The notes beneath the pieces are model-generated. The model saw only the letters and a list, made by a program, of their open reading frames with translations. It had not been told where the DNA came from and did not search any database. Positions 8,703 to 49,133 of a stretch of DNA of 64,000 nt are shown one piece after another. Within the stretch, counting starts at the first letter, position 1, and every line of letters begins with the position of its first letter. This DNA is from Dimorphilus gyrociliatus (lineage: Eukaryota; Animalia; Annelida): the NCBI GenBank assembly GCA_904063045.1, contig CAJFCJ010000006.1:3426408-3490407 (forward strand), read 5' to 3'. The translations under genes and the position numbers were made by a program.

Positions 8703-10598
8703 ATGGCTACAGGTTTATTGTTCAGAGCAGGCACTTCATTACTTAGACCTTGTGCCAGGAGTCTACCTGCCTCCCATCCTGCAACATTCTTCAACTTGGG
8801 TACAATACAATCAGTGACCATAAATCGTCTTCAACTAGACAAACAGGAAAAATTAACTTTTGTTGACTACAAGAAAAGGACTTTGTCATCATTATCTCTA
8901 AGCTCATTGGTGAAATCATGTCCACCAGCATATCAGCCGTATTTGAATCTAATAAGATTCGATAAACCTATCGGAACTTGGCTGTTATTCCTGCCATGCA
9001 CCTGGGCAATTGCTCTCTCAACACCGGCAGGCTCGCTGCCTAGTTTATACATGCTGGGCGTATTCGGATTGGGTTCTTTTTTGATGAGATCATCTGGTTG
9101 CATAGTAAATGATCTTTGGGATAGGGACTTCGATAGGCAGGTAGAAATGAAAATATTCGGCAGCTGTTTCTTTTTTAAAGTTCTGCATCTAATAGGATCA
9201 TGACCTTAAAATGCCTTGCAGGTAGCTCGCACTAAAAGTAGACCTTTGGCAAGTGGAGATTTGTCGTCTTTCCAAGCTCTTTGCTTTCTAGGCCTAAACC
9301 TCAGCGCTGCACTAGCAATATTACTTTCCTTTAACTTGTATACGTAAGTTTTTAATTTATTTATCTATTCTTTCTTTCCTTTTTATAAAAGATTTTTATT
9401 GTTTACAGAATTAAATTGGGATTTCTAGCAATGGTTCCTGTTATTCTATACCCCTTGGCGAAACGGTTTACCTACTGGCCTCAGGCCGTGTTAGGTAGGA
9501 AATCATTGAGAGAATTATTAAATAATAATCGTCGTATATAGTATCGATATCTTACTCTTTTCGTTTGTTTAAATTTTAGTGTTAGAAAGCAGGAGCGTTT
9601 AAAAAAGTTCATTAGCGTAATATATACAATTTACAGGCTGTACTCTAAACCTGGGCGTACTGATATCTTGGAGCGCCATACACGCTTCACTAACATCTCC
9701 CGCCATTCTCCTTTACACGAGCAGTATTCTGTGGACGATGTTTTACGACTCAGTTTATGCGCATCAGGTCAGATCGATAGAGAACCAAAGATGGCGCCTA
9801 TAATTAAACTTTTTTTAAAAGAAAATAAAAACTAATACTTCAGCTAAAAAATTTCCGTATAAGAAAGTCAAAAATAATCAGACATGAAAATTTCTCTTTA
9901 ATTTCCGCAGGAGTTACTTTCAATTGGGGATGCATGATGGGATGGTCAGCAACCCACGGAACTTGCCTTTGGTCAGCTGTTTTGCCTTTATACTTTGCAG
10001 GATTTTCCTGGACAATTCTTTATGATACAATTTACGCCCATCAGGTTTCATTTCATTTTGCTTTTACAAATTGGCGCCATTTTTGGGAGTAATAGCGGGG
10101 GTGTTTTCACCCACGCAACATCCCCCTTATCATTTCTCTTAAATTAATGACAATTATCAAATGTCTAAAATTTCTATTTCTTTTGTATAAATATAAATAG
10201 GATAAAGAAGATGATGCTTTAATTGGTGTCAAATCTACGGCCTTATTATTCGGGGATAAGTCGAAGATCTGGCTAACAGGGTTTGCAGGGGTGATGATTA
10301 GTGGCTTAGTAGCGACTGGAGTCGTGTGCAATCAGACGTGGCCGTATTTTGCAGGGGTCTGCGCCGTAGGCGCTCATTTGGCATGGCAAGTAAGTGAATA
10401 ATTTAACGGAAGACGAATGAAAAGCCAAGTGCAATTATTCCCTCTCAGATAGGTACTGTTCGGCTAGACGTTAATGATGATTGTGCAGCGAAATTTCGCT
10501 CCAACAAGTCACTCGGCCTTCTGCTATTCGCTTCCATTATGCTAGGCAATTTAATGAAGGAGGAAGAAAAAGCGGACAATTTAGAAGAAACTAAATGA
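8703..10598 (+). CDS. COQ2: 4-hydroxybenzoate polyprenyltransferase (UbiA family) with a pair of mutually exclusive exons
   Basis: Exons 8703-9140, 9222-9343, 9409-9494, [9637-9767 or 9911-10044], 10201-10389 and 10449-10598. Motifs [59 protein letters not shown] and GVKSTAL. The N-terminus resembles a mitochondrial presequence. Confidence 0.97.
9637..9767 (+). other. COQ2 alternative exon A (divergent, rhodoquinone-type candidate), 131 nt
   Basis: tacag|GC...CATCAG|gtcaga; encodes (G)[43 protein letters not shown]. Confidence 0.9.
9785..10086 (+). promoter_or_regulatory. Complementary intronic pair flanking COQ2 exon B (candidate splicing-regulatory RNA duplex)
   Basis: 9785-9798 CCAAAGATGGCGCC pairs with 10073-10086 GGCGCCATTTTTGG: 14 contiguous bp, 13 Watson-Crick plus 1 G.U. 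Confidence 0.7.
9911..10044 (+). other. COQ2 alternative exon B (canonical ubiquinone-type), 134 nt
   Basis: ccgcag|GA...CATCAG|gtttca; encodes (G)[44 protein letters not shown]. Confidence 0.95.
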
Positions 10599-13371: not shown

Positions 13372-15436
13372 TTATTCACTAAGTTTGCGGCAAATTCCTG
13401 CTGCAACTTGTCCTAATACGAACGGTTTGGCCTTTTCAATAAGGTTGATTTCAGGGTATAAACTTCTACCAAGACCCTCCACAATAAACATAGCAATCAT
13501 GATTGAAGCAAAATTACTTTCCAGTTTAACTTTATGCTTCGTTAAAATTTGAAAAACTTGGCCTAATAAAAGTGAAACATTAACTCTAGTTAAAGTTAAT
13601 GAGTTTTCTCTAAATTGATTAACTAAAGTTCCTAATTCTTTTCGGAATGCATTTTCGTTCTTGCATTGATGATGCGGTGCGTGCTTCAGCATCAAGTCAG
13701 CGACGTGTTCACCCTGTTTTGAATAAATGATAGATCGGTTATTCGAAAAAAAAAAATCTAAAATCTATTTAGAAAAGGAAACAAACTTCGCCTTGAATGA
13801 TGGATGTAAATACAGCCTTAAAATTGTCTAAATCGTATTCTTCCAAAGACGATGTAATACCAACGTCTAGAAGAACCAATTTAAGAGGCGTCGCAGCAGG
13901 TTTTACGTCAGCTACCAGAGTGTCCCCAATATCGACTAACATAACCTTATTTGCTTGTTTATTGCTCAAATAAGCTTCAGCGTTCTGAACTAGAATATTT
14001 CCTGGATGAAGGTCACCATGAACAAAATTATCGATGAAAATCTAAAAAAAAAAAAAAAACAATTGAAGTAAAGAAAATCGTTAAAAGCAGGTAAAACTTC
14101 AATTTTTTTTTACCATTTTCAATAGAGCCTCTATTCCATAGTTAGCTAAATCCTCTTTTAGATCACAGTCTATCGAATCACTTAAAAAGTTGCTAATCGG
14201 TTCACCTTCCTTCCAAGGGAAAATGTATTAAATAATACTAGATATTCTGATAGAAGAATTAATACATACCTCGAAGGTTTCGACCATTACATTCCTTTTA
14301 CAAAATGGTCGAATAACTCGCGGAAATCGAATATACGGAATGTCCTCGAAGTTTTGAGAAAACTCTTCAAGGCATTTAGCCTCGAACCTTAAATCAATCT
14401 GTTTCGTCATCAATTTTGTGAATTCTTCAACGCACTCTTCTATTGCTATCCATTGTAAACTAGGTATAATTTTTCGACATATTCGTGCAAAGTAACTGAT
14501 TATTTTTAAATCTCTTTGAACACTTCCATAAATGCCTGGATGGAGCACTTTAACAGCAACAGGTATAATCACTGGTTCCGGTTCATCTTCCCCTAATTTT
14601 GACTTCAGTAAATCAATTTTTGATCGGAGTTTAACATCCTCGTCTCCTTCATCGTTATCTTCGTCATCATCGTCATCCTCCCGTCTTCCAAAACCTATTA
14701 ATTCCAAACCATCAGCATAATCTATTTGAGCTTCATCTGACTCGGAGTCAAAGTTGATATCATGTAATATATCCTCGTCAGGGATCATGTTGGCTCTCAT
14801 ATAGGCCTTGTGGCATTGACCTACACAGCCGGAACCCACCGGTACTTTTTCCACGTGAATGAATATTTCCCGCCATTTGGGGCCAAAAGCCGAATGCAAC
14901 TTCCTTTTCGTGGCTCTCCACGAATGCTTGTAACATTCGTCATGCAATTTCGAGAAGAGGTCGCAAAAGAAATCGGAAAATAAGTCGCGGCGAGTGCTGG
15001 CCCATTGGCCGAATTTGATAACAGTTGGTCCTGAAATTTCAACGGCCCGAAGAAATATTTTTAACCAAGTATGTTGTAAAGATTCACTTAATGAGAAAAC
15101 CGGATATACTATCAACAATGGACCAAATGTTAGACTTAACCTAATCCCTCTCCAAAACAGTTTAATGAAATCGTAAATCTTTATGAAAATATTATCAATT
15201 CGTTTCTTAATAGTTTCTTTTGCGAATACTTCTTTTGGAATATTTGCAATAATTTCGTCAGACCGTTCATTGTGTTTACCGCGTCTGAAGGCGAAGGGCA
15301 AAAAGGTGAACGATAGTCGTAAGGGCCGAAGGACATGGGATTTCCTAATTAGCTGAACAACCTGAACGTTAGTTTGATTAAATTTGAATTTTAGCCTACT
15401 GGCAATTAAAACAGTTCTCCTCAACACAAGACGCAT
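13372..15436 (-). CDS. ADCK2: AarF/UbiB-family atypical kinase, ADCK2-like
   Basis: Motifs GPTVIKFGQWASTRRDLF, VGSGCVGQ, VAVKVLHP, QIDLRFEA, FVHGDLHPGNILV, LVLLDVGI and KVKLESNFAS...VEGLGRSL. Confidence 0.9.
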
Positions 15437-47396: not shown

Positions 47397-49133
47397 ATGG
47401 ATGATCTTGCCCCAAATGCTGAACCCGGATCGATTTTAGATAGACCTATTAGATTTTATAATCTATCTGATTTGTTAACCTATTATTCTGGTAAAGTTTC
47501 GGCTCATGGTTGGTGGTCTTTAAAGGTATCCAGAGGGAAGTGTAGAACTTGGTATTGGATTGTTTTAATATGTATTTGCATTGTTCTATTAATAACACTA
47601 TGCTCTTCCACCTTATTAGAGTTTCTTATGTTTCCCGTTACTACAAGTGTCTTAATTAGGAAGGAAGTTAAACTATCCTTTCCAGCTATTACTATATGCA
47701 ATATGAATGCTATACTTAGCGACGAGCAAGCCGAAGGTAGGAAGGCCGGCTATTCGGCTATTAAGCAAGAGTTGGCCGAAAAACTAGGAAACGAAAATGA
47801 CTATATTAAATCAATTAATTTACAAAGATACCTTGGATCGAAAGAAGAGGAAATACGAAGAACATTAGGTCACAAGTTGAAGAATATGCTGGTCTATTGT
47901 TCCTACTTTGGAACTCCATGCTCTAGCAAAGATTTTATGCTGGTACTGAGTACTTCCTATGGCAATTGTTATACTTTTAACGCATTTGGAAATCGAACAG
48001 CTTCTACGTTCGGTGTAACTGAGAGCCTCTTTCTTGTTCTTGACACCCAAGTTAATGAGTACAATAATATATATCAAACATCAACAGGTTTTCGTATAGC
48101 TATTCATAACAATTCGGCTTTTCCTTTCCCAGAGGCCGATGGTTTTAACATTTCTCCAGGCATGCTTACATACGTTGGAGTTCATAGAAAACTATTTAAA
48201 CACATTAGATATCCATATTCGGATTGCAAAATCTTAACAAAAGATGAAATGAGAGATAGAGACGCCTACGTTGGTGTTTTACCACACGTTACCTATAGCG
48301 AATTGTCTTGTATCAAAACTTGTAATCAAATTGAACTATTTAAGCATTGTTATTGTTTCGATCCAGCTTTACCCCGTTATAGGAACAAATCTCACGCATT
48401 CAATCAATTAAAAGAGGAGCTGGGTAAAGATCGATTCGATAATCCAAAAGAGACTATTTACTGTCAACCGGAAAGGGATAAAAAAGTTAAACAATGTATG
48501 GATTGGTTTCAAGAATTATTCATTGCTAGAAAAACTGCAGAAAACTCCAAAGTTGAGGATAGACTTTGTCCAAAATGTATTCCAGTTTGTTCTCAAGTAA
48601 AATACGAGACGAGATTATCATTTGGCGCCTATAGAAATTTGGAACATTTTAGAAATACGAATAATAAAAAATTAAAGAATTTCTACGATACGAGAAAGAA
48701 TAATGAAGAAAGATTGAGCTATCTTATTAAGAATTTAGCAGCCATTAATATTTATTACGAGAATCTTGAGCAGACAATCAACGAAGATGCAGTTAAGATA
48801 ACAACTTTTAATTTTATTGCAGATTTAGGAGGTCATATGGGTCTTTGGATGGGAGCTTCCATTATAACTTTATTCGAATTTATTGAATTTCTATTTGAAA
48901 TTATCTATAATTATATAATATGCCAACAATTTCTTGGTAAAAGAAAATCAGAGTATGATAATTCAACAAGAAGGAAGATAATTAGAAGAAATTCTATGAG
49001 AAAAATTCTACAAGAGGAGGAAGACAAGGAATTAGACTTACTCTTTATTCAACACATCCTAAATAAGGCCAATTTACCAAACACCTACGAGAAATTGTAT
49101 CATCAAAGATTCTTTGAAGAGGAAACTAGTTAA
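47397..49133 (+). CDS. Intronless DEG/ENaC (ASIC-like) channel subunit, 578 aa
   Basis: N-terminal HG motif, TM1, FPAITICNMN, GNCYTFN, Cys-rich domain, and ADLGGHMGLWMGAS selectivity filter before TM2. Confidence 0.95.
   Translation: MDDLAPNAEPGSILDRPIRFYNLSDLLTYYSGKVSAHGWWSLKVSRGKCRTWYWIVLICICIVLLITLCSSTLLEFLMFPVTTSVLIRKEVKLSFPAITICNMNAILSDEQAEGRKAGYSAIKQELAEKLGNENDYIKSINLQRYLGSKEEEIRRTLGHKLKNMLVYCSYFGTPCSSKDFMLVLSTSYGNCYTFNAFGNRTASTFGVTESLFLVLDTQVNEYNNIYQTSTGFRIAIHNNSAFPFPEADGFNISPGMLTYVGVHRKLFKHIRYPYSDCKILTKDEMRDRDAYVGVLPHVTYSELSCIKTCNQIELFKHCYCFDPALPRYRNKSHAFNQLKEELGKDRFDNPKETIYCQPERDKKVKQCMDWFQELFIARKTAENSKVEDRLCPKCIPVCSQVKYETRLSFGAYRNLEHFRNTNNKKLKNFYDTRKNNEERLSYLIKNLAAINIYYENLEQTINEDAVKITTFNFIADLGGHMGLWMGASIITLFEFIEFLFEIIYNYIICQQFLGKRKSEYDNSTRRKIIRRNSMRKILQEEEDKELDLLFIQHILNKANLPNTYEKLYHQRFFEEETS

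Follow-up and report, generated by a model that had tools for sequence, protein, structure and literature searches.

In nematodes, flatworms, molluscs and annelids, an architecture of two alternative COQ2 exons, termed a and e, has been known since 2020 (PMC7434440), and this a/e switch is a known genetic mark of animals that are able to make rhodoquinone and to respire without oxygen. In this study, we asked whether the COQ2 gene of the annelid Dimorphilus gyrociliatus carries such a switch, whether both of the exons are used, and what might govern the choice between them. The gene lies in a 64 kb stretch of contig CAJFCJ010000006.1; this whole stretch is referred to below as the window, and all positions are counted from its first letter.

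The gene for COQ2 (4-hydroxybenzoate polyprenyltransferase) extends from its ATG to its stop codon over positions 8703..10598 of the plus strand, on which all of its parts are located, as delineated by open frames, UbiA matches and spliced RNA contigs. Translation gives a product of ~372 aa for the exon B form and of 371 aa for the exon A form. Exon 1 (8703..9140), identified by its ORF, a match to UbiA profile positions 2-50 and a joint 9140>9222 with GT..AG ends, encodes the targeting region as well as NDLWDRDFD, the first of two Asp-rich motifs. Exon 2 (9222..9343) is delimited by the joints 9140>9222 and 9343>9409, both of which were recovered in all four RNA runs, while the constitutive exon 3 (9409..9494), defined by UbiA profile positions 94-120 and by RNA contigs, ends at base 9494, which is the first base of a Gly codon. 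Two alternative exons follow, namely the 131-nt exon A (9637..9767), assigned to the e type (rhodoquinone-type), and the 134-nt exon B (9911..10044), assigned to the a type (ubiquinone-type), each on the basis of translation, profiles, RNA joints and pN/pS. Exon 5 (10201..10389; UbiA positions 165-228 and RNA contigs) opens with the second Asp-rich motif, DKEDD, and exon 6 (10449..10598), the last coding exon with the stop included, was established from its open frame, from RNA contigs and from an alignment with a relative, designated L009. Membership of the UbiA/COQ2 family was apparent in that exons 1, 3, A, B and 5 each match the Pfam UbiA profile, in an order co-linear with it, and both Asp-rich motifs of UbiA (NDxxDxxxD and DxxDD) were found, in exon 1 and at the start of exon 5, respectively. 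The introns of the gene are short (59-156 nt; 143 nt for the intron between exons A and B), and the exon switch region, with introns of 142-156 nt, spans 0.7 kb. An exact look-up of two ORFs of the window gave no record. The neighbouring ORF at 14228-15436 of the minus strand encodes an atypical kinase domain of the ABC1 type (ADCK family) with only a remote likeness to COQ8A/B (E ~1e-7), and a ubiquinone gene cluster is not claimed. At 47397-49130, the window also carries a single-exon DEG/ENaC gene, for which the closest named relative is a D. gyrociliatus paralogue (46% identity), followed among the named hits by one from Owenia (24%).

A prior reading of the window from its sequence alone (here called the sequence-only reading) had proposed that exons A and B, of 131 and 134 nt, are homologous and encode the same segment of COQ2. 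This was borne out by their coordinates and by their matches to the Pfam UbiA profile (250 positions), which cover positions 125-164 in the case of exon A and 122-164 in the case of exon B. Since both match the same positions, they are taken to be alternative versions of one segment rather than products of chance likeness; the protein identity between them is 42%. Each exon is directly preceded by AG and directly followed by GT, opens with the two bases that complete the Gly codon started at 9494, and ends in YAHQ, just ahead of the DKEDD motif of exon 5 (10201). The phase-1 start and the YAHQ end abutting gt that had been described for both exons are thus seen in the sequence as well as in the translations. 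When either A or B alone is spliced in, a single open frame runs into DKEDD, while inclusion of both (265 nt) or of neither leads to stop codons, in agreement with the frame shift that had been predicted for these two forms. We consider it likely that the gene is COQ2 with the known pair of mutually exclusive exons, in which exon B represents the pan-eukaryotic 'a' core of the enzyme and exon A the 'e' core.

RNA contigs of four runs representing three samples (X1 and X2 from one sample, X4, and X11) were compared with the window, and spliced contigs were present in all of them. Those of X11 are identical to the window, and those of X1, X2 and X4 derive from a lineage that is ~92% identical to it. 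All of the predicted COQ2 exon boundaries were confirmed by these contigs. Mutually exclusive use requires four joints, for which the sequence-only reading had proposed to look. Three of these, 9494>9637 (3>A), 9494>9911 (3>B) and 10044>10201 (B>5), were found in each of the four runs, while the fourth, 9767>10201 (A>5), was found in X4 only, in one contig with 26 letters on its shorter side and exact GT..AG borders. Neither a joint of exon A to exon B (9767>9911) nor one of exon 3 to exon 5 (9494>10201) occurred in the RNA contigs of the four runs. As contigs can hide rare variants, the missing A>5 joint in three of the runs constitutes weak evidence. A further, non-canonical joint (9503>9586) reflects an 82-nt difference of the 92% lineage in the intron before exon A.

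In addition to the spliced forms, X1, X2 and X11 each contain a contig (9635-9938) that continues without splicing from exon A across the entire A-B intron into the first part of exon B, and X11 also contains a contig (9466-9664) with the unspliced intron ahead of exon A. The intron after exon B is uncovered in X1, X2 and X11, and X4 has one low-depth unspliced contig at this position (10016-10228). Because other introns are without cover, the unspliced contigs around exon A are attributed to RNA rather than to DNA carry-over. Reading on from exon A into the retained intron yields 11 codons followed by a stop (9801). Contig depths, which are rough and unsafe for ranking, suggest if taken at face value that most exon A RNA in X11 is the unspliced form. 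These observations would be expected if exon A were mainly an unproductive branch, in which the combination of 3>A and B>5 produces a prematurely terminated RNA that retains the A-B intron, so that exon A would serve to lower COQ2 output or to keep RNA in reserve and not to provide a second enzyme. We nevertheless regard this explanation as unlikely: the productive A>5 joint is present in X4, its absence from the other three runs counts for little given that contigs drop rare variants, and exon A belongs to a conserved exon class (see below) with an enzymatic function that has been proven in C. elegans (PMC7434440). Furthermore, the protein sequence of exon A is selected, which would be needless for a pure poison exon. 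The latter point derives from L009, a public contig of a relative that was aligned over 3.5 kb at 81% identity, and in which exons A and B have the same lengths as in the window and align gap-free. Between the two versions of exon A there are 13 synonymous and 9 non-synonymous changes, corresponding to a pN/pS of 0.23 (p = 6e-4 against neutrality). Judged by this pattern of substitution, exon A is a working coding exon under purifying selection.

The assignment of exon A to the e type and of exon B to the a type was evaluated against published exon pairs. According to Supplementary file 3 of Tan et al. 2020 (PMC7434440), all of the species listed have their e exon upstream of their a exon, and in Capitella, Crassostrea, Biomphalaria and Ascaris the e exon measures 131 nt and the a exon 134 nt; exon A (131 nt, upstream) and exon B (134 nt, downstream) fit this order and these lengths exactly. 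When exon A was employed as a phmmer query against 1.84 billion representative proteins, the best matches were 43-aa exon fragments of the form TLNWG...YSHQ, and the named e-type exons among the matches were those in COQ2 of the leech Helobdella robusta and of the flatworm Macrostomum lignano. No match was obtained when the ORF that surrounds exon A (9621-9800) served as the query. Additionally, 58 exon fragments were divided according to the indel (43-aa versus 44-aa class), and not according to the signature residues, and one profile was built for each class. On the 43-aa (e) profile, exon A reached 80.5 bits, compared with 60.1 bits on the 44-aa (a) profile, while exon B scored 83.4 bits on the a profile against 63.6 bits on the e profile, i.e. 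a gap of ~20 bits between the two profiles for each exon. Beyond the second signature site (considered below), the e-class features of exon A are a one-residue deletion, GV, I-S/A-W and WTM. The earlier assignment of a coq-2 a/e architecture with exon A as the e-type exon is therefore upheld by order, lengths, phmmer matches and profile scores alike and, in terms of these sequence comparisons, exon A is a member of the class formed by annelid, mollusc and flatworm e exons. Two other loci from eukaryote genomes, L010 and L011 (11600-12900, ENA assemblies), carry a COQ2 with an exon 1 that is 55-63% identical to that of the window, and with a single a-type exon and no e exon, which indicates that some near relatives of this COQ2 lack an e exon.

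Two signature changes of e exons, Phe204>Leu and Ala243>Ser, were defined by Tan et al., with the Ser described as invariant (PMC7434440). At the first site (F204), exon A has Leu (TLNLG) and exon B has Phe (TFNWG), i.e. the Phe>Leu change is present; at the second site (A243), both exons have Ala (YAHQ), and the Ala>Ser change is absent. In the sample of the 43-aa exon class, Leu is found at the first site in 26/29 exons, and Ser at the second site likewise in 26/29. The combination of Leu and Ala seen in exon A is also retained in L009. It could accordingly be argued that the A isoform, having the Leu without the Ser of the e signature, is a working enzyme with a non-classical (dual or shifted) substrate choice, and the occurrence of YAHQ both in exon A and in its L009 counterpart is compatible with this. 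A further example is provided by L004:5600-7400 (Logan SRR26425194 contig), where COQ2 has a single e-like exon of 43 aa, P0007, with Leu and Ala (YAHQ), positioned between the YWPQ exon and the DKxDD exon. A tblastn search of the L004 COQ2 locus revealed no a-type exon anywhere in it, and the e-like exon may be the sole version there, in which case it presumably supports ubiquinone synthesis. We consider a non-classical substrate choice for the A isoform to be improbable, however, at a level just below that of an unproductive exon A, since exon A is otherwise of the e class in the features listed above and since, according to the Alvinella genome paper (PMC12403961), the A/S site of e exons follows no clear pattern in annelids, it being the first site that is diagnostic. 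In Helobdella (L003; KB095959.1), the first signature site of the e exon is occupied by Gln instead of Leu, and the exon closes with YSCQ. The annotated COQ2 of this species (XP_009012311.1, 462 aa) includes both types of exon within a single product, an apparent mis-annotation. Exon A of Dimorphilus, which has one of the two 'invariant' residues and yet is selected, can help to decide which residue sets substrate choice.

The preferred reading of exon A as the e-type partner of exon B was also considered in the light of its divergence. In the comparison with L009, pN/pS was 0.10 for exon B and ~0.11-0.12 for exons 5 and 6, so that exon A is perhaps slightly less constrained than exon B, the difference between these two exons not being significant (Fisher p = 0.49); in the 92% lineage, five of the eight listed changes in exon A alter the protein. 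That exon A is a decaying duplicate (a pseudo-exon) spliced in by accident, as might be read from its roughly two-fold higher pN/pS and from these five non-synonymous changes, is hardly credible, given the open frame and unchanged length in three lineages, the significant selection on exon A, the non-significant difference between A and B, and the perfect conservation of its splice sites and flanks. A block of 66 nt at 9602..9667 of the plus strand is identical in the alignment with L009. It extends across the 3' splice site of exon A and over 31 nt at the start of this exon, contains zero synonymous changes, and is put forward as a candidate element for the control of splicing. The intron that precedes exon A (9495-9636 versus L009:4280-4468) is the most variable part of the gene, at 56% identity with 49 gap columns, and the final 35 nt of this intron are invariant. 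The last COQ2 intron (10390-10448, 59 nt) is 98% identical to that of L009, which is above the value of any exon, the other introns being 56-85% identical.

The introns on either side of exon B contain two complementary elements, detected as an inverted repeat and supported by folding and conservation, which may bear on how one exon is chosen over the other. The 5' splice site of exon A is followed at a distance of 18 nt by arm 1 (9785..9798, plus strand), and that of exon B at a distance of 29 nt by arm 2 (10073..10086, plus strand). The two arms can pair without interruption over 14 bp (13 Watson-Crick pairs and one G-U pair), at an energy of -24 kcal/mol. Segment pairs sampled from the window with the same geometry (n = 1472) averaged -8.5 and went no lower than -19.2 kcal/mol, and the energy of the duplex was likewise matched by none of 1000 shuffles. 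Both the MFE and the centroid structure of 9768-10200 contain the duplex, and its motif occurs in these two places only within the 64 kb. The fold of 9768-10200 as a whole is not unusually stable (z = -0.9), and only the long-range stem stands out. RNAduplex analysis of whole introns was abandoned in favour of the contiguous-helix test, as 82/500 shuffles performed equally well; the former is uninformative because AT-rich introns yield long bulged duplexes. A second pairing, of exon A positions 9673-9679 with 9791-9797, was rejected on the grounds that its exon A side is unconserved in L009.

With regard to conservation of the duplex, arm 1 is situated within a 17-nt run (9784-9800) and arm 2 within a 19-nt run (10068-10086), both of which are identical in L009. 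The introns that hold the arms are only 74% and 70% identical to those of L009, and the joint chance of the arms being conserved is ~0.7%. Arm 1 has no listed difference in the 92% lineage. The arms are conserved relative to L009 without any compensatory change, and an alternative reading of them as a protein-binding motif is accordingly retained. Past arm 2, the intron between exons B and 5 contains two further conserved runs (10090-10101 and 10107-10121), whose stretches of G and of C might fold locally into a hairpin; the sole change in the stem of this potential hairpin (10090-10121) in L009 is non-compensatory. In the leech, the a exon is flanked by a 19-bp helix (reached by 0/60 shuffles), which is a weak case in view of the kilobase introns there. 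This cross-species comparison of the stem was confined to the leech, as one of the two exons or the intron downstream was missing from the other loci.

A mechanism may be proposed in which pairing between the A-B and the B-5 introns assists exon choice. The stem would loop out exon B together with both of its splice sites and would place the 5' splice site of exon A beside the 3' splice site of exon 5, thereby favouring the e form. Should B>5 be spliced first, arm 2 would be lost; if this were to happen after exon 3 had been joined to exon A, the A-B intron would be left unspliced and a premature stop would result, a sequence of events that would explain the abundant unspliced A-B contigs. That the 14-bp stem sets COQ2 exon choice by looping out the ubiquinone exon, with the A-B-retaining RNA arising as the by-product of a lost race or representing a held-back pool, is a tentative proposal to which we attach a little less than even confidence. 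The conserved stem around the ubiquinone exon nonetheless offers a concrete and cheaply testable candidate for the mechanism. The Dimorphilus switch is the most compact version (0.7 kb) and, with introns of 142-156 nt, would therefore make a handy minigene for the question of exon choice.

As regards function, analogy with C. elegans genetics (Tan et al. 2020) would have the A form prenylate 3-hydroxyanthranilate and thereby feed rhodoquinone synthesis, while the B form would prenylate 4-hydroxybenzoate and feed ubiquinone synthesis. On the same analogy, it is reasonable to infer that the animal makes rhodoquinone, and it may use fumarate reduction, as the sequence-only reading had suggested. 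A literature search on Dimorphilus and hypoxia returned nothing useful.

The tandem-exon design has already been published for annelids and very probably for D. gyrociliatus too: Fig. 9 of the Alvinella pompejana genome paper (BMC Biol 2025; PMC12403961) names this species as one of the annelids in which COQ2 exons are duplicated in tandem, and the legend of the figure remarks on the non-diagnostic A/S site. On this account, the exon pair and the occurrence of Leu without Ser in exon A are both rated as already known. The finding of the switch in this species is thus nothing new in kind. The additions made here are RNA joints for D. gyrociliatus, selection on exon A, the intron-retaining form and the conserved stem. 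As far as can be judged from its available part, the Alvinella paper contains no RNA evidence for Dimorphilus, no intron retention and no RNA pairing (PMC12403961). No paper on RNA pairing at coq-2, or on the mechanism of coq-2 exon choice, was found in the literature, and the duplex around exon B is new as far as these searches reach.

When compared with known systems, the Dimorphilus gene resembles the 6e/6a pair of C. elegans coq-2 in possessing tandem homologous exons with e upstream, in encoding the same core segment, in mutual exclusivity and in the Phe>Leu change (PMC7434440). It differs in that both C. elegans exons measure 134 nt, as opposed to 131 and 134 nt in Dimorphilus, and in that the second signature site is still Ala in the latter (PMC7434440). 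Moreover, function in C. elegans has been proven by CRISPR in combination with quinone measurement (PMC7434440), while that of the Dimorphilus exons is predicted by reference to C. elegans. Capitella teleta, Crassostrea gigas and Biomphalaria glabrata share with Dimorphilus the 131-nt e exon upstream and the 134-nt a exon downstream on the same strand (PMC7434440), whereas the switch introns of these three genera extend over hundreds to thousands of bases compared to the 143 nt of the Dimorphilus A-B intron. With respect to the pairing, the closest parallels are Dscam, 14-3-3xi and mrp-1, in which mutually exclusive splicing is steered by strong conserved intron pairing that loops out one alternative exon and brings together distant splice sites (Yue et al. 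2017, cited in PMC7434440). In COQ2 of Dimorphilus, one pairing only, conserved without compensatory change, was found, in place of a docking site with competing selectors.
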